64,000 bases of DNA from Botryllus schlosseri (Eukaryota): assembly GCA_051294905.1 (NCBI GenBank), contig CM119377.1, forward strand, positions 15,128,001 through 15,192,000. The letters are read 5' to 3'. Positions 3,101 to 51,100 of the stretch are shown in pieces. The number at the start of each line of letters is the position of its first letter. The first letter of the stretch is position 1. The notes beneath the pieces are model-generated. The model was not told where the DNA came from and searched no databases. It saw only the letters and a program-made list of their open reading frames with translations. The position numbers and the translations under genes are program-made.

Positions 3101-6100
3101 CAAACAATACCTGATGGAGGAAAAGGTAAAGTTTCGCCGCTGTTTATGATTCCGAACTTGTCATGAATGGTACTGCAATGAAATTCCATCTGGTTCTCTA
3201 ACCGATATAACGCATTCACTTTGATATCAATTCTATTTTTGGAAATAGAATATACGATTGAATAGTATCTTCATATTGAAATGAACCTGAATATTCTCGG
3301 CTGACACCCGTCAGGGGTAATCGTCAGGAACTAGTAGAGAATTGAAAAGAAAATTGTGATAAATCATATTATATTAGATGTGTATATTATACGCCAACGT
3401 CACAAATAGATGCAAATTCACAGATTCTGCGCATGATGAGAGGCTACGATGAAAATCAAAATATCCTCCTTCCTCCCCGTCTGCCTGGCGACGATCTACC
3501 TCAAGAGCTGTTGGAGTTCTACGAATCGCACAAAGCGCCTTCTGCAGAGGAAGAGATCAAGCACGCATACCGAGAAGCAGACGGTAGGCATTTTGTTACA
3601 GCTGAACGTGATTGAAATGTACTGTATGAAATCTCTCTTGTTGACATTACTGAAATTATGCATGATTTATTTTCATAAATATATTCTCTATTTAGTTTTT
3701 CTACATCATTTCCTTAACAAAATAGGCATGCTGCGTTGTTTTCTTAGCATATATATTCTGAATGGTTGGCTTATATGTCTGTGTGCCAGATTAATATATA
3801 TTTTGTTATGTAACTCTTTCCTTGTGCCTAATTGCGATGAATAAATACCCCTATCTATCTGTCTGTCTGTCTGTCTGTCTGTCTAATAGGGATAAAGCCA
3901 GTTCATTTTATGTGACATCCTACTCTCTGGCATGGATCTTTACTTTGCCGACCACTTGTATGAGTTTGAAATTGTGTGGCTAAGGTTCCCAATACGCCGC
4001 AAACGATGGTGCTGACGAGGAAGACCTTGTACCAGCATCAGGTGCCGCCAGCGTCGCCAGGCAAATGACTATGCCGGGATCGAGAGAAGTTTTGCAAACC
4101 GAGGAGTCTGGCGTTTCTGTAAATGAATTCTCCACCGACGAATACAACCCTGAAAACGAGCAGGTGTGAAGTCTTTCGAGATTTTTGTTTCAATTGGCTA
4201 TTTACGAAACTGATTTACTATCATACTACCACTATCAAACTGTGTCGACTATGAGGTTCAGTACAAATAGGGCGACGTTTAACTGGAAAATACCTACCCA
4301 AGTGTTGGGGTTTCTCCTCGCGTAAACGCATAAATGGTGCCTTAAAAAAGCTTAGAACTCGGCCTTGCTACAAGGCGGCAGCTATCCAATCATAATAAAG
4401 AATATTGGCCTGATGTAAGTGACCGTTTCAGTCGAAAAACCACCATGACTACCACAAAATAACAACAACTGAAAAATATTTAATATATCTGCCTAAATTT
4501 TGAATGTTTTCTGTTTGTGCCTTTCGATTTCATTATGTTGTTTTTGCATGCATTCAATGCTATATAGTCCAAGAAGTAATTAAACAGTCTAATGTCGATT
4601 GTTTAGGACGAGGAAACCTCCCCCCACCCGAGTGAAAAGAAAACTTCGACATCAGTGGCTAGAAAGGAAAGCGACGTGAAGGTTGAAAATGACCAGGGTA
4701 AGTCAAAAATGAGTCCTATCTTCCGTCATTTTCTACTGCCGACATCAATAAGCATCTCCTGCATTTGAGAACCACTGCTATAAAACGAATTGCACTTATG
4801 TGCAATACTACTCTCTCAAGCAATATACTGGAGAACTACTCAGACACTCAAGTTCCACTTGAAATGGTGTTAACCTCCCATACTTGCACTTTAGCCTACT
4901 TGATAAGCATCCACAAGTAATTGCCTGCTGATATTGAAATGTTTGTTATTGCCGGTTTTGGTCATTTACATAGACTGTAACTATGTGTAGCGTTTTAAGA
5001 CATTTTGAGTTAGGCCTACTTACTGTCATTCATCTTGCAATTTCGAACTTCGCCGTTTACAATTACCTGTAAAAAGTATGGGAAACCTTGCTTCATGGTT
5101 TATTTGATATGTATTGGAGTATTTTTGTTTAAATAGTGTATTCGTTTTGTAGCGAGCAGCGTTGGGGTCGGAGAATTGGAAACACTGAACAGCCCTGTTT
5201 CGTTAGCAATCGCGAGACATCTTGGAATTGATTTGACTGCCGAAGGAAAAGCTGCCCGCAATCGTCGCGGTATTGCTATCATCGTACACGGACCACCCAT
5301 GTCTGGTAATGTTTTTCTCTTGTGTGCAATGTGTGCAATGGTCATTTAGGTATTCTGGAAAAATGGAAGCAATACTGTGTACAGTCTAGTGCAGGGGTGG
5401 CCAACCTTTTTGGCCAAAGGGCCACATTCCATTGCCGAACCATCGGGCGGGCCACTAGCCACGCTAAGCGTGAAAATTTTTCAACGTTTATAGGTCAATA
5501 GTATTGTTATATTGAGTATATTAAGGGTCTGCTGTATATTGCTGGGCTCAGTTTGCATGAACTGTGACTATTCGGCGTCTGGACATATCGATATCAAAAG
5601 CTTCGGCCAACATGCGTCAATCATTTTATGCCTATGTGTCATTGTCGACGGTCTTTCTGCGAGCTCAAACGCAATGTCACATGACAAACGACAATTTCTC
5701 TCGTAATTGCTCTTATAATTAGACTTAATCTGGTGCATTGGGCGTTCTTTCATTTTCAGGAGGGGGTAACAATATTAAAAGCAAGATATCGAGTGACAAC
5801 ATATTGCGGGAAGTGGGAAGAAAATTTTTGCTTTAGATAAATCTACCGCAGAATATTCTGCTTTATTGTAATGTACGGAAGGTCTACCAAAATTTGACTG
5901 GCTTATATTGATCTTCCAATGCATTGAAACTGATATTTTAGTCATCACATCCCCAGTGTTGCGGCCAGACTAATCAAATTTTTGGTTGGCCATGCAAGTT
6001 CACACTCTGGGCAATCCATTTTTGGTAATATTACTAATTTATAAAATTACCTCGCAGGCCACTCAAAACCCACAAGTGGCCCGCGGGCCACGGATTGACC

Positions 6101-21100: not shown

Positions 21101-24100
21101 GACCACAAAAGAGTAAAGCCTCTTTCAACTGCATTAAAGATGATCTGTTATTTTTTAACCATACCTATTTGACCTCACTTGTGGCAATGATGTGGATTTG
21201 ATTATGACTTCACAGAAGTGAAATTTCTAGTAACATGGGTAGCATCGAGTTACGTCTTTTGGATGCTGCGATAAGATCTATTGTGTTTCAGGGATTCTTG
21301 TCATGCGAAAAAGGTTTCCAAACTATAACTCGTGTGAATAATAAGTGGTTCTCAAACTGGGGAGCGCGCCCGAACTGGGTGGAAGCACCCGAAGGGAGAC
21401 GTGAAACCACCTGAGAGAATTTATGTTTCTTGAACTTGGAATGAGTATAATTTCTGCTGAAACTTCGAAGTTTCAACAATGGCAGTGATCCCAATTATAG
21501 TTTGATTTAAAGTGTCATAATTGCGTCGTACCATCCACACACTGATGCTAGACCTTGATTGATACCGAACCTTGCACTAATGAGAAGATATGCCTGAATG
21601 AAGTGTAACTGGTGAATGCGTGTAGCTGTGCCATTGGTTTTTGATTTGGTTTATGTTCAGGTACGTTTGAGCTAAGCTCAAGTGGGGTAATAGAAGGGAT
21701 TAGGCACCAAAATTGCTAAAATATCTATGTGATACGTGCTACCATTGCACAATGCACATGATTATGATCATGTTTAACAAAATATTATACCGGAGAGTTA
21801 CCTCCAGCTCATAATTATTGCTCTGTGCGAATTCTGTGTTTGAAAAGTGTTTCAACAGCCATAACTCCTTCCATGCCACCAAACAATGCGTTGGGATTGC
21901 AATGTTTAATATTTTTTGACACGACGATAAGGGGAGCGCGAAATTTTTCACTCTCATCAAGGGGGGTGGTTCGAAAAAAGTTTGCTCTAAGTGAAAGGAG
22001 GTGTATAATTTCAGTACTCGAAAAATTAGGTACTCACTACTCGACTCGAATCATTGCAGTTTCTACTCAATTCGGATTCGATAACAGCCTTACTTATGAA
22101 TAGTGTGTTGCATGCATTACTGGCTTTGCAATATTGTGTGCTCTGCGTTTTTCTGATGTCGACCCGTGTAACAATGTTTATCGATTTCTCACAGTTTTAA
22201 TTTGGAAGCGTCTCCGGCCAATTGCCCTCCGATAGAGGAATTATTCAGCATCTTGCCGCAAAAGGGCACCTTGATTCCAAACGATCGTCCCACTCAGGTA
22301 ATATGCTGCAGGTAGCCTTTTATAAACTAGTGGTCATTTTCTTTCAATTTGCAGGCATATTTTACGCCTATTTTCTAGTTTGTATATACAACCATTTCAT
22401 TGGTACCACTGTTTGTAAAATTCTCAAAAGACCAGTCAATACTAGTAAATAGGCTATCGTTACTCCATCAACTTAATGATAATCAAGTTTCAGTTAAGTA
22501 GTGAACTTGTGTTTCAGTGATATATTGGATGAAAACTGACCAATATATTCACCCACTCATATTTAATACAAGCCACAGCTGGTCAGAGGTTGTCTGTAAC
22601 AAAGTAGTTGTACTTGCTTTCCTGACTCAAGTGGCTATGTTTATATGCTACTTCCACTCCTACTTAGAACATTTTTAGGCAAAATTACGTACTTAATACA
22701 ATTTGAACAGCTTCTTGGAGGTACAGAACTTCAATATACAATTGAATAGCTCATTCAGATTGAAATGAACCCGAATATTTTCGGCTGACACTCGACAGGG
22801 GTAATCGTCAGCAACTAGTAAAGAATTCAAAAGAACATCGTATATCAACAATCGTAGTACAAAATATGACATCACCTGCATGAAATGTCGAATACGAGAG
22901 AGTTCTTATTCGACATTTCATGCTGGTGATGTCATATTTTGTGCAATGATTGTTGATAAACGATGTTCTTTTGAATTCTCTACTAGTTGCTGACGATTAC
23001 CCCTGACGAGTGTCAGCCGAAAATATTCGGGTTCATTTCAATATGAATATACTATTCAATTATTACAATTTAGATTTTGAAAAGTTGAAAATAGTTTTGA
23101 TGTAAGTTTTCGACACTTTTATCAGTGAATTTATCATCAGATCCATGTGAAATGCCCCGATATCACAGTAACTGGATATATATTTTTGAAGATTTTTCTA
23201 TTTGTAGAGTCATTGTAGTGATACATCTTGCAATCTTGAAAGTAGCCACATCAGATTAACCTCTAAAAGTATCCAACCCCTCGACCAAATTTGCTTTTGA
23301 AATTAGTCGAGTACTTTTCAGCCCATTCATTTTCTACTTCTGCTTCCTGTAGTTTTGACATATCTTGAAAATCTCCACTTCTAGTTGTAATTGGGTAGAA
23401 ATTTACAGCATTACTTCCATTTGAGCAGCAATGCTGGCTGCTTTCACCAATTTTGCTGGTGGCATGAGATGAAATTTCAGTATGTAATACAATACGGTTC
23501 CTGTTAGTATGTTGTATCCGTTAATACCCCTCCCCTTGTCAGGTGCAAGTGATATTCCGTTCCAAGTTGGAAGTCAAGATTCAAGATCTGCCGTTGCTGA
23601 GATGCCAAGTGATTGAACCCAACATCTCAGACGGCGGGGAGATTATCGCGTCGATACCGATCAAATTGACAGCGCGCAGCGTGTTCAGCAAGTACAACAT
23701 CCTGCCGTCGAGAGACATTAATTTCGGACCGATGGTGCAAAACTCGAAGAAGGGGCGGCAATTTACGATCGAGAACAAGGGAGAATTTGAATTCAAGGTT
23801 TGGAATTTTGCTGTTTACTGTAGCACGCAGCAATTCCATACAGATATTAAATTGATTTCGCCAATGTTTTCAAGCCACTCTTGGCTGAAGCTATCGCTGA
23901 AATAAAATTCTACGTATCAATCGTGTAATATCCATGGAAACTGATAATGTGTAGTTAAAGCAATATTTAGAACCTGTGTCGAATTTGCGCATTTGATTGA
24001 CGATGGCAGCACAATGTTTAATTGTTAAACTGCTCAGAACATGCTAGTTGATCTTTTGCCACAAATGGTTTTTGGTTCAGCTATGATAGACTGACATTGC

Positions 24101-33100: not shown

Positions 33101-36100
33101 GTTGTTGTCATTGTCTAACGAAATAAATATCGCTACATGTATTTTATTGGAGTTCAACATTACAGCATTGCATGTACTTAATCACCCTTGGATACCTGTT
33201 CACTTATAATGTTTTGGTAGATATGAACATTTTTATGCATTAGTAGCACAATCAGATTCATGTTCAAAATAGCGGTCATGAAAATAAGCAGACTGTACAA
33301 CATTAGCAATACCTATCTATGGATATAAGTATACACTTCCACACAAAATTGACTTGCTTGTTTTAGGTATCGGATTGGGATGACAGACTGCGCGTCGTCA
33401 AATGGGTTGACGTCCCCAAGCAAGTAAATGACAAGCAACCTAGCAAACCTACCAAGAAAAAGGTAACTTTTCACTGGCCTTTCATACCTCTAATGAGATG
33501 AATTCATTACTGATTCTTGTGGGCATAGAGATACAAAATGATATGTCGTTTGACCTAACACTGAAACTTGATTTTCTTGTTATTTTTTAATGTTCAAAGT
33601 TTTACGACTTCTATCACACATTTCTGTACAATTTATGGATGCATGGTATCAGAGCATTACACTGTGAAAATACAATTCGTTATGGTATTATACTTCATGA
33701 TTGTATCGTGGTCTTTCATAATTGGAGTAATAACTGTGAAATAAAAGTAAGATTTGACCATTGAAAATATAACATTAAGAAATGGTTCGAATGAGCCCAT
33801 TAAAATCTTAGGATTCAATTGAAGTTCTGCATCTTTGATCGAATTTTCTAACATTGCTGGTTTCGAACCAAACCGAAGGGTAGCCTAACCCGTGTGTTGC
33901 GCCTTCGTTACCATCTGAAAGATATCACAATGATTGATTGTAGTTGTAGCATGCCTAGATTTGTTCCGAATGTCATGCTACTGATATTCAATTAGATCGA
34001 ATTCGGGGCTGCATGGTAAGAAACGTATTCAGCAGTATTCTCTAGCCTGGTATAATCAAGTTTTAAACTTTAATGTTGAGTTCACAATGCGCAATTGCGC
34101 ATAGCTAACCGCAAATTAGTAAAATTGTGTGGCGGGTGTGCTATCATTCTGATGAAGCTATCGTAAATGCCAGATTCTGGAACACGACGGCGTGATTTCC
34201 ATTGCACGCGTCCTGGCGAACTATGAATGATCTAATTAGGTGTTAATCTTCGCACGCCTTGCGCATTTTAGCACCTTCTGTATATGTTTCGAAAGCGATT
34301 TACTCACAGCATTTCCGAGAACCCTACAGTATCGCCAACTGTCTCCTTGCCATGCCAGGCGTATAGGGAGTATTCCGCGGTAAAAACGGTCTTGTTATCT
34401 ATTAGTAGCGGGTGCGTTTGGTTCCGTTTGTACCGGTTAAAACCAGTCTGTGCGATATCTCTCGTGTTCGAAGGCACGCTTCCAAGTTGAATGAGTTTTA
34501 TTACATTAATTACACAAACGGTTCGGATTGTTACATTTGTTAGCAGTTTTTATCAATTCAATACACCACAAAAATTGCCATGCAATGTAAAGATAGGAAG
34601 GTGTCGAAACGACTTGGAGTAGTCTTTGAAATCAGACACCCACCTTGGCCTAGGACCTAGGCGATATAAAGAAATATAGAAATGTATTGAAGGAGTGCTG
34701 CGTAATGTATCATGATTCCACGCCGGCACTAACGCAGACGGCGCACCAGTTACGCTTTCGGTTATATTTATCAACCTACAACACCAATTTTAATCACACG
34801 CATAGTGTATGTTTCATATGACTCAATCCTCAAATAGATGTAGATAATTTAAACCCTGGTACCCCATCCTTGAAGTCTTTGTATTACGTACTACTCTTAG
34901 AAGATATGCGCTATACTCAGTGTTATCATCTAGGAGTCCTTTCCTAGTTGAGCCTTGCGTAATATCGTGCCTAAGTCCTTGACAATGTAACCCACTCTGT
35001 CCAAGATTCACGCGTCAATTTACCACATTCAGTTGCCCTGAAACTTTGGCAGTCACAGACATTTTGGTAACAATTCTGTTTGGTGGGGTGACAACCGAAT
35101 AATACCGAGCACACCAGCTAGTATTCCAATTTAGATCTACTACTGCCCGAATCACATTAGATTGGATTGTACCATCACATATATTTGTATTTGGTGAGAA
35201 TGTTTAGCTATGGCTTGTCGCAATAAAACAAATTTATTTGGACAATATCGTGTTTTGATTGCGTATTAACCTGATGCAGCGTTACGATTTTCAAGCATTT
35301 TTCGCCGCTAGATCTTATTATAACGTATTTCCGCGCCCAAAATCAACACCAATCTGTCATAAAAATATCGTAGCCGTATATTGTACACGTCGCATACAGG
35401 CATGTGCGCGTCTGTCCGTGCATATCTATTTGCAGCCATTCACACCGTGCAGAGAAATATCACTCGCTGGCCTAATCTAAAAGCCAATCGGGCGCGCATT
35501 TATCAAAGCCATTTGCAGTGTGACCCAACTTGTTAGCAGCGTTCAACGGAACATATTCGGGTTAGGATTTACAATTTCAGTCTTCGCTCTGCGTCTCGTT
35601 TAAGATACGCGCTTTGAGATCGTCAGACGAGTTATCCCGCCTTACTATTCTCTCCTTCATCGCGTTTTTGGCTTCTTTGAGTCGCTTTCGGGCATCGTCT
35701 TTGTACTGCCTCGCCGATACGGAGCCTTTTGTGTTCACTTTGGAAGTTCCAGCACCGTTTGAACGCTTTACATTGCCTTTCGACGGCCCTTGAGCCGGTC
35801 TGCGATTGACCTTGTTCTTCTCCAAGTTTTCAAACTTGTCCAAAATGTCTTCGATCTGAAACGATATCATCTCCCAGAACCCTTCCAAGTCGCTTTTCAT
35901 GATAGGTTTGTCTCCCGGGCGTGGGTTTACAAAGCAGCGCACCAGGCCTTCGAATTGTTTGAACCTGTCGCTGACCAGTAGATTCGTCTGGCCGATCACA
36001 GACCTGATTTCGCCCGCCAAAGTATGATACGACGCGTCCTGTAGCACTGCGTTCCATCGGACTTTTTTTTCTTCAAGTTCTGCTGTTGCTTTTTGAAGCA

Positions 36101-39100
36101 GATTACTAAAATATGTCGCGTCTTCGTTGCTTTGTCTGTCGTTGAGTTCTGCTGTTTGCATATTCTCTTGGTCGCTGGAACAGTTGAAATGCTTAGTTTC
36201 GGTAGCAGTTTCTTCTAACGCGTGGAAGTTTTCGAAAGTGTCGTATTGAATTCTTATGTTCTGGTGTCTACGGAATGAAGATAATGTACCAAGGCTCACG
36301 GACGACGCCTTCTGCTTTATAAGATCCAAGAAAGACCTGAACGATCGTGATGATTTCGTGGTGTCTCGCTGGTGATTGCTGTATCCTTCCGAATCTGAGG
36401 GCACAGTGCTTATACCACTCTTCTTAATTGGGCTGGGCGTTGCGCGAATGTTTTTGATAATTCCGTCACTCGCATCGTGCAAATAATCATCTTGAATCCG
36501 AAACAGGGCGTCCGGACATGACTTGACTCTCTTACGAATTTTAGGAGCCGTGCTTTCTTTCAACGCTTCCAGCTTTGGCGTCCATAAATTGCCGCTCGCT
36601 TTTTCAATCGATCCGTAAGCGCTATGTGACGTCACAATCATACGTTTCGGCTGTCCTGGAAATGTGTCTTCCGATCCGCCGTTGAGTCTTGTTGCATATT
36701 CCTGACATAACAATCTACTATGGGTCGACACAACCTCTTTTTGCTTACCATGACGATTAGTGTCGAGACTTTGTGACCTTCTGAACGGTATCCTTGACGC
36801 AATCGCCATATTTGGAACCGATTTTTCATGCGAAACATTATTATTTCTTGCGTCCCTGGATAACATATCTGCACTGCTCACATACCACGCCTACTTCAGC
36901 ACTGAACTGAACACTCAATTACATATTCGCGGGTATTTATCGACTTGCAAACCGCGAAAGGTTTTCTCACTCCTGGAAGTAATCCAGCGGCCGACCCGCG
37001 CGTCATATCTGGGAGAGCGACTGTAGCGCGGCATTTTTATGGCTTCAGTTTGAATAGGCTTATCCCGATTAACACTTCGCCCCTACTTTCTTCCGACACA
37101 CATTTCTTGGCCTTTTTGAATAGATCGGCGACCTTGTTACTTGTGCGAGGCGATTTAGATGGCGAGCGATTGATCTAATTGCTGTAGCTGTTTCATGGAT
37201 ATATTTGCCAAAGTGATGACAGCCATTCTGGTTAAACATCAGTAGATAATTTTGCGGATGGCCATGCGTCGACACTCGACCAAGATTCCGTCATTTGTCT
37301 GCCATCTTTTATTTCCGCTCATGGGCGAGATCTGCTGTCTAGAAATCAGATTATGCTCGCTGTGCTTCTTTCAGTATTTGTAAAATGGTTTCATCACAAC
37401 ATGCATTGCAACGATAAGACTTTTCGTCTTGCTCTTATCAAGAGTTATCGGCACATAGTGTTTGTAGGAGTTGTTGGATATCGGCCGTATGAATTGTATT
37501 CAATCGCCCGCGAAGCGGTTGAAAGACGAAGCTAGTGTTTGTAAGATATTTTGACGAATCGTATGGTGGATTTGCACGTAGACGGCTACGCTTAAAGAGG
37601 CACTGCGCTCTAAAATTGATGTGGTCTCAAATTGAAGGTAAAAACGAACAAAAATTTTTCGCCGCAGCCATTTCCTTCAGAACGCCACCGTAATGGAGCT
37701 GCAATTTATTGAAATTTCTACAAGACCAGCTGCCAGAGCTGCTTAACCCGTTACATGGCGCGATGTCTTCATCGTCGCACTTGCTCGACGCGATAAGGCA
37801 GTCACGCAGAGAACGAAACTTAGACACATTTCCCTCATAACATCGGCTGACAACTATCTAAAATTCGTTCTCTGCGTGACTGCCTAATCGCGTGGAGCAA
37901 GTGCGACGGTGAAGATATCGCGCCATGTTGCGGGTTAAGCAGCCGCGGCAGCTGGTCTTGTAGAAATTTCAATAAATTGCAGCTCCATTACGGTGGAGTT
38001 CTGAAGAAAATGGCCGCGGCCAAAAATTTTTGTTCGTTTTTACCTTTAATTTGAGACCACATCATTTTTAGAGCGCATTGCCCCTTTAATTTAGTCACTT
38101 CAATGGTTCCCTCACCTTTGCCGGATTAAGCGAAGAAACTACTTCGCTAAATTAATCGGAAATTCAATTGTTCTTTTCATAGTCATGTGTAAAGGCATAG
38201 TGCACGTTGACAATTGACATACTGTATTCCTGCCTAACAAATGAATTGCCGCGCTACTATACTACGGCAATCGTCACTGAACGGGTCAAGCGCACGAGAT
38301 TTATGCCTCATTTCGCTGCCAATCTTACATAGTATATTTGATATCCTCAACAACGCAGCTAATTACCGATTTGATAAGGAAGCGACTTAATTTTTTTCGT
38401 TTTCTTTCGTGAGCAATTTCACATTTTCTATGCTAAACCTTTTTACAACATTCTGTTCTACAAGATGAACGCAATTGTTCCGATCGGCTCTTCGAAGTAA
38501 AGCGATTTTCAGGCTGAATGTGTGTTAAAGCGAACGACATCAACGACAGGAATTGCGAACTTGTATCCGGATTAACTGGAGTTTTTTCACATGCAATATT
38601 TACTTTTGTTCCGTTCCCGGGCATTTTGGTCGTATAAAGCGATTGTTCAGGCGACCCGGGATCCTAATTAAGCGAATTCAAGTGTATGGCAATACGCATT
38701 TAACGTCCGTATTAGATTACCGATGGCTGACTTCGGTATCAGCAAATTCCAATAAAACATCAACATTGCTTTTGGGTGGTTCATCGTACTTTCTGCGCGT
38801 TGTGTATCATTTCTTCCGTATAAATCCGTGATTTTAACTTGTTAATTATAGCCCTAAATACACATTAGCGAGGCTTACTCGCCTGCATTACGTCCCGCTT
38901 GAAACTCATCTCGCATCGCACACATAAATGAAGCTTCCATTTACTTGTTCAGGTGATCGAAACGGAGACGGAGCCGGCCAACAGCGTGATCGAGGGCAGT
39001 TCCAGGGCTTTGGAACTCGCTATTTGCGCCAACGTGAATTACGCGAAATTCAATTGCCAGACGGATCACATCAACTTCACAGACACGATGATGCTTCAGT

Positions 39101-42100
39101 CCCGAGTATACGAGTGGGTGACGGATTACAGTTATACGATGACCTTGTATAGTAACAACGTGATAGTGCTATAATTTCCTCTTAAGTCGCAATTCTATCC
39201 ATATATCTTCGGCCTTTGTGTTTTATCTGTGTGAAACACGCAATGTGATATGCAATACACGAGGTACAATGCGAATCGTAAAAGTATAAATTAGTGTGAT
39301 GAAACAGTGTTTCAACTTTCAAATTAGCCAACATAGCGGGATATTATGACGTCACTGATGTACAAAACAAAGTTAGACTATCAGGAATTGAAATGCAATG
39401 CAACGCCTAATAAAACATTTTAAATACGAGTGAATTAAGCGAATCGCAACTTGATTTATTTTCTTACTATGAGATTAGCGATGTCTATTAGGTTGATTTT
39501 CGAGACTTCTGTTTGAGTGCCAGCATAGTCGTGCTTTAGTTGGCCATGGTTGTGTGCAACAATGTGAGTATAAAAATCTGCATTGTACAATGGCGCAATA
39601 TGTATAAACTCAATGAGCCCGAAAAAGGACTTCGCGCATTTTTCCAATCTATCTCAAAAATTAGGTCTGTTGCGCATAACGGTCAATATTTCCATCATAG
39701 ATTTGTATGGCAACGCTAAGCTTAAAAATGAAATTCACTATTAAAAAAAACGCGAACTTTTTGCTAAACATGTATTTGGCCATATTATTCCTTACAGACA
39801 TCATCGATCTGGATGTGTAAAGCTTTGCGTTCTTTATTAATAGAGTTTTACTGCAAAACATCGGAGAGGTGCAGTTGGAATATTCCTGGAGCGTGCATAT
39901 GGAAACTCCGTCTTTGCCTCGATTGGAATCCGCCAATTCTGAATACCCAACGTCCGTCGTCACGGCGAGGTACGAATTATACTGCCCGACATACTTATGA
40001 CATTTAGTTAATTAAATCGAAAAGAAATCAACCTTTTTGTGCGTGATTTTAGGAGCGCTACCGTCGAGTCGACAGTTGCGTCGCCTTTGGCCGCGGACGG
40101 TTCGCCGTTGCCATTTTCGGTAACGCCGAAGGACGGCAGAATCATGCCCGGCAAAAAGCAATATCTGACAGTTCGCTTCAATCCGACTGAAGTGTCGGAA
40201 TTCCAAGCTAGGCTCGTGTGCAAGTGAGTCGTGTCTCTGTTGTGTCGAGTTATGCCGTTCGCCCTAGCCCGGTACATGCCCACTGTTTACGTCAGGCATT
40301 TAATTATATACCCTATTCCCACTATCTGCCAGACTTGTAAAACTCGATATTTTCAGCCTTTCCAAATTAGATTAGAATTAGAATTACTGAATTTGAAAAA
40401 CTTCAATTTTGAACTATATAAGGAAACAAAATCATATACAGCTCATAAGCATTCTCATAAGCAAGAGCATGGCAAATGTCTTTACAGGCTTGGCTCGTTT
40501 CGCGCAATAAAGTTATCCTGTAGCGTTTGCAGGAAAACCAGACATTAGACTAGTGTTAAAATGAGATTGTAGAAACATTTGACAAATTAAAGTAGAATTA
40601 GAATTAGATAACAGGGTAACAATTGATGACAAAACTTCTACTTCTCTTTATGTATCAACGCTGTCTACATGGTTATGTCTCGAATGCGAAACCTATGATT
40701 AAACTATCTCTGGATGCCATTTGATGTAAACCTGACTCTGATAGATTGCTGGGGTATCAATAACGTAACCAGATTGACCGAGGTGCTATATGCGAATCTT
40801 TCTCCATCCAGCATCCCGAACAAGGAAGAGGACAAATCCGACCCTGAAATCCGGTTGCGTGGCCGAAGTTTGATGCCGTACTGCCACTTTGAACTGGCGG
40901 AGAGCGATTACATATCCGGGAGCAGGCGAAATCCGGATCTTCCGGGTCCCAGGGGGGCTCCGCCCGGCACCACTCTCGATCCGAACATGCGCGTCATCGA
41001 ATTTCAGTCGGTCGGCGTTGGGATAAAGAACGTCAAGTATGTTTTTCTTTGCAATGGCTCTGTGTGCTAAGAACATACGTGACTGTCTTCCCATTACCTG
41101 TTATTTCCGTTAATTAATATCTGTACGGTCTGATCGGTGTGGATTGTAATAGGCTTTTGTCGTAATCTTTGTTACAAACTTAACAACATAAGTATTCAGT
41201 AACGCAGTATACTCCTGTTATTTCTACCTTATAATACCACGTGACTATTTTTGGCCCGTTTATGGCTGGATCAGGGGTGGGAAAGAGGCAAATATTAGGT
41301 TCAGCACTCCAGCACTGTGGTCTGTGGCGTCATTACGTGTGAATGAGTTGGAATAAATGTGTGTCTTGCGGCTTGATTTCGTTGTCATTACAATAGATTG
41401 CGCGGTGGATCGCCGTAATTCTTGCTTTTATGGAATCATAACCACCGGATATCTGCTTTAGAAGAGTTTCATCTCACAGATATATATATATTCAGTTAAC
41501 AGTCGAATGACAACTTTCGTGTTTAGTCATGCGTGTTTCGCTACCGTTTTTCATAGCTATGACGCCGTTTCGCGTTAATTTGCAACGGTTTTATGACAGA
41601 CGATAGAAACGACGATAAAACCACAACAAATCATCGTACGAATTTTTGAAATCCATTGCTGAAGGCTCAATCCTTAATCGCGAATGCGAACTTTGGCAGA
41701 AAATTCTGGATCATGAACCCCTCGGACGCCACGTTTTCGTTCGTCTGGGAATGCGAGGATCCGATCGACGCCAGGATATCGCCGTCGTTCGCCTGTCACG
41801 TATTGCAAGGCACTATCGAACCTAAAAAGAAAACTGAGGTAAGGGTGTCGCCGTTAATAACTCTCGATATTTTTCAGATTCTCTCTCTTTCCAGAACGAT
41901 TGTAAAACTATCGTTTAGTTTCCTGTGCACGATTACGTAGATATCCTTAACTGTAAGGTACAATATCGTTTCTGAATTAGATCTCCTTCGAATACACCCC
42001 GTCTCACCTGTATGTGGCGGAATCGTTCTGGAGATTCTGCATACTCGAACACAAGATCTCGCTTCCGTTCTTGTTGGTCGGGAACGCTGACGAACCTGAC

Positions 42101-48100: not shown

Positions 48101-51100
48101 AAGACCATCTCCACGTAAAGCTTGATCTTGTGAAGAAGCCCTAAGCCAGTGGTTCTCAAACCTTTTTAGACATGTCCCGCTTTATGATACTAAAAATTGT
48201 CGCCCCCCCCCCCCCCTTATTGTCACATCACAAAATGCATCCATAAACCTAGCAATCCGAACGGATCGTTTAATGGCATGAATGGTTATGAATGTTGATT
48301 AGAGAATTCTATAATATGAATTCGGGACTGTACAGTGCAATAACTATAAGTATGAACTCGAGGTAAATCGCGCGCAGCGCGAAAATTTTTTCAGTTGACT
48401 GCAGCTCCGCGCCCATTTCAGATGCTTTCATGCCCCCACAGGGGGACGCGCCCCACAGTTTCAGAACCACTGCCCTTAGCCGTTTTCTAAGCGTCTCGGT
48501 CTTAGCAGTATTTCGGCCATTGCAGGTCAATTTCAGCATTTGCAAAATGTTTTCTTAGCTTTCTTCCGAAATCTCAAATCAAGTCGCGGGCCGCAGAATA
48601 TGACCTCGTGGGCCGCATGCGGCCCGCGGGCCGCGTGTTGGTGACCCCTGAACTAACACATTGAGGCTTTGCGTTATTTAAACGTTTATTTCTGTTCCAG
48701 CATCGAGTGTCTCTACGAGAACACACCGCATCTGGAAGTGGGATTCCAAGCGGCCGTCTTGGCGCCGGGAGCGTCTACGGACGCGGTCATCACCTTTTTC
48801 CCGCGCTCTGTGACGAAATACAAGGAAGTGATACCGTTTCAAATCAACGGCCTGTCGACGTACGCCGTGGACGTTGACGGCGAGGGAACTGAACTTCGAG
48901 TGAGTTATAATACAGTGATAAATAGTCATTCGCGCTTTTTTCAAAATCTTAACTATCATTGTCTAACTTGATTGCATCGTGACCCACTATGTGCAATGTG
49001 CAACCTTCCAAAATACATTCAGTTACAGGGACTATTGCACTATATAAGTGATGCATATTTATCCCAAAAGTATAGGAAGTAAATATTTTTGCCTAAACAT
49101 CGTCACGTAGAAGTAAAATGACTCAAAAAATAACCACTTTAGTAAGTAACGTGATGCCAGAAACATGTTTTACTAAGGAATATGGTGTAGGAAATATCAG
49201 AAACTCGGCTCAACTATTTTTTGTTACATGGCGCTATCTCCAAAGAGTCATTCCATGGAAAGCCTTACAAGGCTATTTCTGCGTCATATGCATATCATTC
49301 ATTGCGAGACTGTGTGAGTCGGTGAATATGCCGCAAAAACAGCAAGGACAAAAATACAATCGTCCCACTCCGATTTACATGTTTACCAGAAGGTTTCGGA
49401 TTGTAAAATATAGCACTTCGTAATCTGTAAATACAAGGAACCGTCAGTAATGAAACCAACGATTCAAATTGCAGGTGGAGGTAGCCAACCCGAAGCAGAG
49501 AATGTTAAAACTCGGCAATCTTCGCGTGGGTGAGGCCGCCACGCACATCGTTCCCGTCATCAACAGGAGCCCCATTGAAGTCAAAGTCAACGTGTCTGTA
49601 ACCCCAGTATTAACGCCCCTGCACGACCCGCGCGTCATGTGCGTCAAACCTTCCGAGCCATTCGTTTTGCCCGGAAAGGGCGGCACCAAAGACCTGAGAG
49701 TTTACTTCGCGCCGCAGACTCGCATACCTCACTTTACGGAAGAGGTGATGCTGGAATGCGAGGGGATGTCCGAGCCTCTGTTCGTGGTCAGCGGTAGTTG
49801 TCAGGGCATTGAGATTTCGTTGGATCAAGATTCGGTGCCTTTTGGCGCCGTGGTGCAGCGCAGTTCGAGCACGAGGAGGATATTGATGCAAAACTCCGGG
49901 GATATCGGAGCTGGGTAAGCGTGCTTTTGATATAGAGCCGGATGTGATCAAAGTCATCAGACATGGTATTCAACAGAGGTGATCCGTAACGAACTACTTT
50001 TTTAGCATAGTAATCAAGTGAGTTTTGGTTTTCTTAGACAAAACCAGGCCTTGAATACTTACTAGTCACTATAATGTAACACTGAACTTTGCAACGGAAG
50101 GCTAATCAAAGTAAATTATTGATTGCTTGATTACGGATCAACACATTACTTAGTACCAATGATTAGTAGTGAATACGGTGGTCATTTCTGATTACAAGTG
50201 AAAACATACGATATCACGGGACGATCAGAGTGCGCCAATAGAAATATATCGCGTGTAACACTTTGCGTTACCTGGCAATCCGCATGATCGCGAATAAATG
50301 CATTATTACCCCGAGATGTGACCGCAAAACAATCTAATTTTACGGCAAACGAATCGGCCATATTACTGCACAACTGTAATGTACTGTACAGTGTGCAATA
50401 CACACTACATATGGAGAATGGTCAGGTCACGCCATGTATGCGTGCTACTCTCATTGCCTTCGATATTATAGAAATTAACTGAAGAGGCTGCTGGTGCTGG
50501 TGGTACAGAACTTAAGTATACAGTTGAATGATATATTCGAAGTGAAATAAACTCCTAATTTCCGGGTTTACTTCAATATGAATATGTTGTTCAACAGAAT
50601 TAATTGGTACTGCCACTTAAAATCGCTGGCAGTCGTGGCAAGTTTTCTTAAAGTGTGCAAAACGCAACGCTAGCAAAATGACGCGTGAAACGGCCTTCAA
50701 GTAAAGGCTTGGATTATGCGTTCAAGGCCGCAACGAGGTTCCGAATCTAAGATTCTAAAATAGTGAATTCACAGAAATCTGCTAGCTGCATATATGCCGA
50801 TAGGGTCCACACTTGCCATCGCGAAACGAAACACTTGAAATAACTAGTAGTAACACGAAGTGGCGTCTGCATTCTCTCAAATTTGAGGTTATGCGTCGAA
50901 ACAGCGCGTCGACAAGTTCTGAATTCGATACGCGTTAGTCGTAGCGCGTCGGTGGTGTAAAGGTTAGCATTGTTGCCTTCCAAGCAATAGATCCGGGTTC
51001 GATTCCCGGCCGACGCACGATTTTTGTTTGTTATGTTTCTTTTGCGTTAATTTCGTCGTTTCATTCCTTAGTACTAGTGTGACTGAGGGATTTGATCTTA

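Follow-up and report, generated by a model that had tools for sequence, protein, structure and literature searches.

The longest open reading frame in the window (the whole 64,000-nucleotide stretch of Botryllus schlosseri DNA that was analyzed) encodes a GKAP-domain protein and lies antisense and wholly within a single intron of the HYDIN gene. This HURP-like gene is best explained, with a probability of about 0.72, as an old ascidian single-exon paralogue of HURP/DLGAP5 which was duplicated within the tunicate GKAP family before the divergence of Botryllus schlosseri and Styela clava, was probably retroposed, and whose product is predicted to bind tubulin.

Gene structure and transcription

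The coding sequence (35577..36866, minus strand) runs uninterrupted for 429 codons and a stop. Its in-frame upstream extension, which brings the frame to 434 aa, reaches just a GTG at 36881, and the runner-up in the window is 190 aa long. Both the long open frame and the GH1/GKAP domain reported in the initial annotation are borne out: the HMMER check proposed there matches Pfam GKAP (PF03359) to aa 168-405 with 68.4 bits (E 1e-18; cut-off 27), a genome scan gives the locus 69 bits, and the orthologues P0001, P0002 and P0007 are colinear with the protein over its full length.

The host gene is on the plus strand and its exon translations match the solved HYDIN chains 9ijj_4G and 7sqc_F0 in colinear order. 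The exon 5' of the host intron (33367..33460, plus strand) matches aa 3779-3798 of 9ijj_4G and the exon 3' of it (38951..39113, plus strand) matches aa 3807-3862, as found by phmmer against PDB sequences, and both are present in a spliced 7,073-nt contig assembled from RNA run X1. In this contig position 33460 is joined to 38951, skipping the 5,490 bases of a GT..AG intron (33461..38950, plus strand), and the HURP-like frame is therefore located wholly inside one intron. The antisense nesting in HYDIN that had been proposed from the letters is thus confirmed by spliced RNA as well as by the exon matches.

The HURP-like gene has its own unspliced mRNA of approximately 1.5 kb, separate from that of HYDIN. 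A 1,512-nt contig of run X1 is colinear with 35379-36890, with no extra letters and no upstream exons, at a depth of 195 versus 54 for HYDIN. A contig from a second study (X2) spans 35328-36577, and the raw RNA-seq reads of a third cover the coding sequence at a depth of 5-15. RNA depth is zero over most of the flanking host intron, two repeat blocks excepted, and one RNA run displays reads on the HURP-like gene and none on either of the two flanking HYDIN exons. Co-expression with HYDIN in testis or ciliated cells, put forward in the initial annotation, is at this stage a conjecture, the RNA runs bearing coded tissue labels. The transcript presumably originates from the minus strand, as deduced from the open reading frame (X24 is unstranded and the contigs carry no strand). 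The 5' leader seen in the X1 contig (36867..36890, minus strand) is a minimum, the true start being probably slightly further upstream. The 3' UTR was followed to the limit of the RNA contigs (35328..35576, minus strand; to 35379 in X1 and to 35328 in X2), and an AATAAA is found beyond their reach at 35233-35238. A TATA-like box, ATAAATA (36934..36940, minus strand), located 74 nt upstream of the ATG, is a candidate promoter inside the HYDIN intron; comparable boxes lie 68 nt upstream of the orthologue in locus L001 (2823-2829) and 71 nt upstream in the Styela locus L014 (9930-9935). The gene, which the initial annotation took to be still functional, is covered by RNA from three studies. Two other outcomes envisaged in the initial annotation were not encountered: there are no spliced upstream coding exons belonging to a sole DLGAP orthologue, the contig being colinear and the DLGAP5 orthologue being another gene (C11, see below), nor is the gene silent or evolving with a dN/dS near 1, as it is transcribed and under constraint.

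Conservation, paralogues and origin

Comparison between species places the HURP-like gene in its HYDIN intron since before the split from Styela clava. The orthologue of that species (XP_077975806.1) consists of one 1,458-bp exon, antisense, between orthologous exons of a HYDIN gene encoding 5,435 aa, and at locus L001 of a third species the gene and the two HYDIN exons that come next are arranged head-to-head, which answers favorably the synteny check suggested in the initial annotation. Conservation of a single-exon gene at this intron position in Styela clava implies an old gene and not a recent retrocopy. The orthologous proteins share 30-41% identity, versus 51-77% for the host HYDIN exons. 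Synonymous sites are saturated (pS 0.74-0.89), with a pN of 0.26-0.36 for the GH1 core and of 0.50-0.59 for the N-terminal part, so that the dN/dS check, also suggested, came out in favor of constraint on the core. Polymorphism at the gene yields a pN/pS of about 0.44 (21 sites).

Three GKAP-domain genes are present in the Botryllus schlosseri genome, the other two being designated C11 and C5. C11 displays at least three introns in GH1 and an FDAVFFKV motif, clusters in the trees with a Phallusia protein and the DLGAP5 of Ciona savignyi, and is on these sequence characters the true DLGAP5 orthologue of Botryllus schlosseri. C5 is a multi-exon gene with at least four exons across GH1 and clusters with the LOC100176117 proteins of Ciona and Phallusia. 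The HURP-like gene was itself considered as the DLGAP5 orthologue and rejected: it is C11 that groups with Ciona savignyi DLGAP5, the HURP-like clade stands apart, and the R[YF]KK motif of the vertebrate DLGAP5 importin-beta/microtubule region is absent from the protein. In the phylogeny the HURP-like clade is separate, and its grouping with Styela has a support of 97/90. The best tree joins this clade to C5 with a support of only 53/0; joining it to C11 costs 18 lnL and is not rejected (p-AU 0.08), nor is a grouping of all three ascidian clades (p-AU 0.19). The C5/LOC100176117 type is therefore weakly favored by the trees as the nearest paralogue clade.

An ancient retroposition is a plausible origin of the HURP-like gene, and probably the actual one, since in C11 and C5 the GH1 domain is distributed over 3-4 exons with introns at common positions (before G/D-E-I and after FQV), and the HURP-like copy has none of them, all introns being absent from its colinear RNA contig. 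The retroposed functional paralogue initially proposed stands in part: an intronless, intact and transcribed gene with multi-exon relatives was found, but a young retrocopy is excluded and no retroposition scars were detected, there being neither an A-tract past the 3' UTR as a poly(A) relic nor flanking direct repeats indicative of a target-site duplication. The disappearance of such scars is expected for an old event and carries light weight. The search for an intron-containing parent was likewise successful in part, as C11 and C5 qualify as multi-exon relatives but are not separable as parent by the support values and p-AU given above.

As the parent gene is ambiguous, a minor but appreciable share of the probability goes to gradual intron loss, in which an old paralogue would have been made intronless step by step and have reached HYDIN via local duplication or rearrangement. 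Tunicates lose introns readily, and both the missing scars and a parent that is not identifiable from the trees are compatible with such a course; against it, the GH1 introns common to C11 and C5 are absent all at once, and the gene is located on another contig than both paralogues and in an unrelated host gene, as is typical of retroposed copies. A recent origin from the DLGAP5 gene, as a retrocopy or processed pseudogene whose frame is open by chance, is very improbable: the lack of introns and the multi-exon paralogues of the same genome would suit this explanation, but the single-exon gene shares its HYDIN intron in Styela clava and adjoins the same exons in L001 at the low identities given above, is at most 53% identical to C11 or C5 in the best exon, is transcribed in three studies, combines a constrained GH1 core with saturated synonymous sites, and is devoid of poly(A) tail and target-site duplication.

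The GH1 domain and its predicted interaction with tubulin

The GH1 domain is predicted to fold as a three-helix bundle at aa 232-354 (35805..36173, minus strand), as delineated from AlphaFold2, Foldseek, phmmer and the translation. The bundle helices (aa 232-276, 278-313 and 324-354) were obtained with a pLDDT of 94-98. A further, fourth helix (aa 384-424; 35595..35717, minus strand; pLDDT 70-90) contains the conserved ARKRLKEAKNAMKER motif. The ARKRL-type motif noticed in the initial annotation is indeed present from aa 392, and A392, K394, R395, L396, A399, K400, A402 and M403 are invariant across four orthologues. Foldseek superposes GH1 on HURP (8x9p_C) with a TMt of 0.92, an rmsd of 1.3 A and 43% identity, and also matches DLGAP1 (4r0y). 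The phmmer scores are 84.4 bits to 8x9p_C versus 38.6 bits to 4r0y, in agreement with the HURP-like, and not DLGAP1-4-like, character initially attributed to the protein.

Mutation of residues R468, E480, Q484, M512 and Q516 of HURP abolishes its binding to tubulin (PMC11471760). The corresponding residues are R288, D300, Q304, M333 and Q337, four being identical and one changed from E to D; the other orthologues carry E at position 300. The five contact residues are widely retained elsewhere in the GKAP family, too. A complex predicted with beta-tubulin reaches an ipSAE of 0.86, the best of 3 controls scoring 0.00, and the 0.86 possibly reflects memory of 8X9P. The three runs share at least 95% of their contacts, with a partner pLDDT of 87. 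Of 78 solved complexes, 51 attain the mark employed for complex prediction, as do 2 of 108 mismatched pairs. The predicted interface brings residues 285-304 and 320-340 of the HURP-like protein against beta-tubulin 172-182, 208-219 and 383-397, and reproduces the published HURP interface around F212, the 172-182 loop and helix 383-397. Most likely, judging from the model and from the analogy with HURP, the GH1 bundle would bind beta-tubulin on its exposed longitudinal (vinca-site) face. Homology and the predicted complex describe a likeness to HURP, not binding by the HURP-like copy itself.

The N-terminal half had been described as some 240 S/R/K-rich and unrecognizable residues. This description holds: the first 240 aa have a pI of 9.5 with 50 S+T and 36 K+R, are predicted as disordered by AlphaFold2, and a phmmer search with the N-terminal 235 aa among 160 GKAP-family proteins matches three orthologues and nothing else. 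Two motifs of this half, NxWxxKLxxLxE and SxxxxxKQxxS, are conserved in the orthologues. It is unlikely, though to be taken seriously, that GH1 no longer binds tubulin and has another partner, with a function set by these lineage-specific motifs. Their conservation and the replacement of contact residue E480 by D speak for such a change; against it, only one of the five tested contact residues differs, by a conservative change and with E kept in the orthologues, the fold superposes almost fully on that of HURP bound to tubulin, and the predicted interface reproduces the published one.

An SxIP-like sequence, SRIP, is found at aa 24-27 (36786..36797, minus strand) and is a candidate EB-binding, plus-end-tracking signal. 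Four orthologues agree in S24, R25 and P27, three of them carrying SRIP and one SRVP, and the [ST]x[IL]P pattern occurs within AIASRIPFRRSQS (aa 21-33), in a basic, Ser-rich and disordered setting devoid of nearby acidic residues. Four-letter SxIP patterns are frequent by chance, and a role of SRIP in EB binding is put forward here as a conjecture from the translation.

The favored explanation, an old paralogue predicted to bind tubulin, can be formulated as follows. A disordered basic N-terminal half of approximately 230 aa, without the microtubule-binding/importin-beta region of HURP, would carry short conserved motifs including SRIP, and the HURP-type C-terminal GH1 bundle would contact the longitudinal face of beta-tubulin. 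In this way the protein would act on tubulin or on the dynamics of microtubules; should SRIP recruit EB proteins, growing plus ends would be a possible site of action. A more specific version, rather doubtful at present, is that of a minimal EB-recruited tubulin-handling factor in which SxIP brings the HURP-type bundle, capping the plus-end face of beta-tubulin, to growing microtubules. To our knowledge, a two-part design of SxIP and a tubulin-binding bundle has not been described for any GKAP-family protein.

Relation to known systems and significance

Human HURP/DLGAP5 (PDB 8X9P; tubulin-binding domain 428-534) shares with the HURP-like protein a GH1 three-helix bundle followed by an ARxRL helix, the beta-tubulin contacts R, E/D, Q, M and Q, and an equal predicted interface. 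In contrast to HURP, the Botryllus protein, of 429 aa, is half as long and is encoded by a single-exon gene, has neither the N-terminal microtubule-binding domain nor the importin-beta NLS region (RYKK), and is missing the FDAGFFR-type motif after GH1 that C11 retains. The Styela clava orthologue (LOC144431917, labeled "uncharacterized protein" by NCBI) is colinear from SRIP to the C-terminal helix but only 30-33% identical, with 485 aa and extra acidic insertions in its N-terminal half. LOC100176117 of Ciona intestinalis and Phallusia mammillata is a further short (462-512 aa), uncharacterized GH1 protein of tunicates which, like the Botryllus one, has no HURP N-terminus; it is multi-exon, located outside HYDIN and without similarity beyond GH1.

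That the gene is the ascidian equivalent of DLGAP1-4/Vulcan, synaptic scaffolds which link the guanylate-kinase domain of MAGUK proteins to Shank, is highly improbable: the Pfam family and the helical GH1 fold are common to both (SAPAP, PDB 4R0Y) and there is a superficial resemblance between its VNPRPGDKP loop and the loop NPNAHPRP in DLGAP1, but the similarity is weaker than to HURP (29-30% identity, with less than half of the bits), pattern searches find no RxxSYxxA guanylate-kinase-binding repeats, TQT dynein-light-chain motif or C-terminal QTRL PDZ ligand in a protein ending in LNETQSED, in line with the initial annotation, and a TRL ending occurs in none of the best 150 GKAP-family matches.

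As a member of the class of nested intronic genes and functional retrogenes, the HURP-like gene has the usual single exon on the opposite strand of one intron, together with a separate transcript and a TATA-like box; it differs by the missing retroposition scars and by a nesting kept across species in spite of the low identity of the proteins. Its long-kept position might stem from shared chromatin, or from a regulatory connection with the assembly of central-pair microtubules in ciliated or germ cells.

No long-standing question hangs on this gene. Annotation nevertheless benefits, with three GKAP-domain genes now recognized in Botryllus schlosseri and the DLGAP5 orthologue identified among them. 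What appeared as a retrocopy has become a dated, conserved ascidian gene family already present in NCBI as an unnamed protein, and a clean case of an antisense nested gene held for long in one host intron while its protein diverged. For the family, a testable biochemical guess is provided: a HURP-type tubulin-binding domain that would operate detached from the microtubule- and importin-binding region.

A nested reading frame within a HYDIN intron

The single-exon gene at 35577-36866 on the minus strand displays 429 codons without interruption in the ORF list. Its frame is limited upstream by an in-frame GTG at 36881 and constitutes, with 434 aa, the longest ORF of the 64-kb window, the runner-up reaching 190 aa. 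The window sequence contains no N. A match to the GKAP family (Pfam PF03359, curated cut-off of 27 bits) covers aa 168-405 with 68.4 bits, an ARKRL motif starts at aa 392 and the protein ends with LNETQSED; a pattern search of the protein retrieved neither RxxSYxxA repeats, nor a TQT motif, nor a QTRL end. The Ser/Thr-rich aa 1-240 are basic (pI 9.5) and predicted by AlphaFold2 to be disordered. The features reported in the initial annotation, namely the ORF, the GKAP/GH1 domain, the ARKRL motif and the lack of repeats and of QTRL, are all present, and its GKAP assignment passed the Pfam check.

The translated plus-strand exons of the window match solved HYDIN chains in colinear order. In chain 9ijj_4G, the exon at ~26.9 kb corresponds to aa 3418-3486, those at 33367 and 38932 to aa 3779-3798 and 3807-3862, and those at 40.8 and 49.5 kb to aa 3959-4036 and 4447-4592, respectively. 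The SDWDDRLRVVKW exon and the VIETE.EP exon flank the host intron. In a 7,073-nt contig from sequencing run X1, position 33460 is connected directly to 38951, so that 5,490 bases bounded by GT..AG are left out. This joint identifies X1 as RNA and places the nested ORF wholly within a single HYDIN intron, on the opposite strand, in agreement with the antisense nesting proposed initially.

Additional elements were observed around the gene. An inverted repeat of 233 nt with 92% complementarity and a spacer of 32 nt occupies 37592-38089, at 0.7-1.2 kb upstream of the gene; it yields many short RNA contigs with a depth of 490-700 in X1 and looks like a transcribed MITE-like hairpin repeat. The Rfam search of the host intron returned nothing but a sub-threshold mir-999-like match on this hairpin (37797-37884, minus strand, 26 bits for a gathering score of 58). 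At 34584-34654, a ~70-nt repeat that matches no Rfam family reaches an RNA depth of ~3,200 in X1 and shows varied loose contig ends on both sides in all runs; depth and loose ends identify it as a short interspersed repeat shared by many transcripts. A tRNA-Gly(TCC) (50946-51018, plus strand; 66.6 bits with Rfam, also found by ARAGORN) resides in a downstream HYDIN intron on the HYDIN strand. The whole-window Rfam scan at gathering threshold reported this type of RNA only and no ribozyme family, including for a hammerhead-like candidate at 22738-23062 (155-bp hairpin).

Transcription of the nested gene

A separate X1 contig of 1,512 nt is colinear with 35379-36890, without gaps or additional terminal letters, and is deeper than the HYDIN contig (195 versus 54). 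In a second study, a contig spans 35328-36577, and raw RNA-seq reads from a third study cover the nested CDS with a depth of 5-15. The rest of the host intron mostly displays zero RNA depth, two repeat blocks excepted. The separate colinear contig and the mostly silent flanking intron show that the nested gene makes its own unspliced mRNA of ~1.5 kb, which therefore has no upstream coding exon. Judging from the ORF, this RNA would originate from the minus strand, which cannot be read directly because the library of run X24 is unstranded and the contigs are strandless. Both the nested gene and HYDIN are represented in X1. Reads of X24 fall on the nested gene and none on the HYDIN exons at either side of the intron; as these exons are short, this is weak evidence on the co-expression with HYDIN, which remains, as in the initial annotation, a conjecture.

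A TATA-like box is found 74 nt 5' of the nested ATG, with counterparts at 68 and 71 nt in two other species, which suggests an ordinary promoter inside the HYDIN intron. The RNA contig begins directly after an AG, as would be expected if the 5' end were made by trans-splicing; the conserved TATA-like box nevertheless makes an ordinary promoter the simpler reading. The 5' leader also includes a start-stop mini-uORF (ATGTGA, 36878-36883, minus strand) 12 nt before the main ATG, which is kept neither in the Styela gene nor in L001, a contig of a third species carrying an orthologue.

Conservation, paralogues and origin

A word-indexed protein search retrieved two proteins from Logan assemblies that are colinear with the nested protein and 41% (440 aa) and 37% (445 aa) identical to it. 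An exhaustive representative search added Styela clava XP_077975806.1 (485 aa), annotated as uncharacterized LOC144431917 and nothing more. On the Styela chromosome, LOC144431917 consists of one exon of 1,458 bp; it lies within a HYDIN gene of 5,435 aa, in the opposite orientation, and is flanked by exons homologous to those at 33367 and 38932 of the window; the orthologous HYDIN intron is therefore occupied. L001, the source of the 440-aa protein, bears the two following HYDIN exons in antisense orientation; they begin 1.85 kb upstream of its start codon, compared with 2.09 kb in the window. The synteny check suggested initially thus retrieved the same HYDIN intron in Styela and a position beside the same HYDIN exons in L001. 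The next-nearest relative, P0009 (267 aa), has no HYDIN exons on its 1.8-kb contig, which is consequently uninformative on nesting. Among the best 150 of 959 family matches, none from Ciona or Phallusia belongs to the window clade, which hints at a gene specific to Styela-like ascidians.

Between these species, identity amounts to 51-77% for the HYDIN exons versus 30-41% for the nested protein, a low value that fits the fast evolution of tunicate proteins. Synonymous differences among three species are saturated (pS 0.74-0.89), and no interspecies dN/dS ratio is given for this reason. Over the same species, pN is 0.26-0.36 in the GH1 core versus 0.50-0.59 in the N-terminal half; the polymorphism pN/pS, from 21 sites listed in the RNA runs, is ~0.44 and the changes are mostly conservative. 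Purifying selection acts on the gene, strongly in GH1 and less so in the N-terminus. The initial reading was right on the integrity of the gene. A recent retrocopy, in contrast, is contradicted by the Styela copy and the saturated pS: the gene is much older, and the initial interpretation is wrong if a recent event was meant.

Genome scans located two more GKAP loci in the same genome, both multi-exon, which confirms the expected intron-containing relatives. The first, C11 (G000:C11:5341443-5347518, stretches L004/L008), has its GH1 distributed among four or more exons; next comes an FDAVFFKV motif resembling that of vertebrate DLGAP5, and further downstream a large Ser/Pro-rich exon. As it clusters in trees with a Phallusia protein and with the 'Disks large-associated protein 5' of Ciona savignyi, C11 is the DLGAP5/HURP orthologue of the genome. 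The second, C5 (G000:C5:12061293-12065424, minus strand, L010/L011), clusters with LOC100176117, an uncharacterised protein of Phallusia and Ciona intestinalis to which it is orthologous; these proteins make up another tunicate family with a short chain and a GH1 domain. No DLGAP1-4-type gene was found among the best candidates scored in quick genome scans. Outside tunicates, the proteins P0006, P0008 and P0154 of the prawn Macrobrachium nipponense, annotated 'centriolin-like' or 'caldesmon-like', display an unusual architecture of three to four tandem GH1 domains per chain.

The window gene, the two Logan proteins and Styela form a clade (support 97/90) apart from those of C11 and C5. The best tree unites it with the C5 clade with a support of only 53/0; union with C11 is 18 log-likelihood units worse and is not rejected (p-AU 0.08). 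C11 and C5 have common GH1 intron positions, before G/D-E-I and after FQV, none of which exists in the window gene. Retroposition from a tunicate GKAP paralogue, as put forward initially, is the simplest account, since all introns are gone at once and the gene landed in an unrelated gene on another contig. Neither a target-site duplication nor a poly(A) relic was found at the nested gene, and stepwise intron loss is a possible alternative route to the intronless state. Within the GKAP family, the gene belongs to the HURP branch and is specific to its lineage.

The GH1 bundle and a possible tubulin contact

The initial HURP-like assignment was upheld: the nested protein scores 84.4 bits against human HURP (8x9p_C) and 38.6 bits against the DLGAP1 GH1 (4r0y), and is in sequence far nearer to the former. 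The AlphaFold2 model features three long helices (232-276, 278-313 and 324-354, pLDDT 94-98) and a fourth one at 384-424. In Foldseek, the solved bundle of HURP 428-534 ranks first (TMt 0.92, rmsd 1.3 A, 43% identity) and the crystal structure of GKAP GH1 next. A review calls the role of GH1 in DLGAP1-4 unknown (PMC5583998); a later result identified the HURP bundle as a tubulin-binding domain (Saju et al. 2024, PMC11471760), whose site is the longitudinal, vinca-site face of beta-tubulin and in which mutating R468/E480/Q484 or M512/Q516 abolishes binding. The nested protein has R288, D300, Q304, M333 and Q337 at these positions, with E in place of D300 in the three orthologues.

Residues 240-360 of the nested protein were modelled together with an animal beta-tubulin of 95% identity, in three runs and with three controls. 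An ipSAE of 0.86 was obtained, versus 0.00 for the best control, with at least 95% contact agreement across runs and a partner pLDDT of 87; 51 of 78 solved pairs attain the same mark, as do 2 of 108 mismatched ones. On beta-tubulin, the predicted interface involves 172-182, 208-219 and 383-397, and on the nested protein residues 285-304 and 320-340; these surfaces coincide with those of the HURP paper (PMC11471760). As 8X9P is already solved, the score may derive from that structure, and the prediction supports likeness to HURP rather than binding by the window copy.

The N-terminal half lacks the RYKK motif of HURP and shows no similarity to its microtubule-binding/importin-beta region, to C5-type proteins or to other family matches. 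The orthologue alignment nevertheless delineates four short conserved islands within the disordered basic chain: SR[IV]P (aa 24-27), NxWxxKLxxLxE (aa 93-104), SxxxxxKQxxS in a short predicted helix (aa 175-191) and RxxxxxxxxYxxxE (aa 199-212). The SxIP pattern is reportedly a route for many proteins to EB1 and growing microtubule ends, and SR[IV]P fits it as a candidate EB-binding motif. HURP 200-620, a fragment with the tubulin-binding domain but not the lattice-binding part, was shown to sequester tubulin and to increase catastrophe frequency (PMC11471760). The nested protein could act likewise; alternatively, if recruited to microtubules by EB proteins or by its basic N-terminus, it could operate at plus ends.

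Our literature search retrieved no paper treating HURP or DLGAP5 together with ascidians, and no description of the nested gene or its conserved nesting was found in the literature searched; the family is already in public annotation, although unnamed. The nested gene holds no surprise of principle, but constitutes a tidy evolutionary case and provides a clear biochemical hypothesis.
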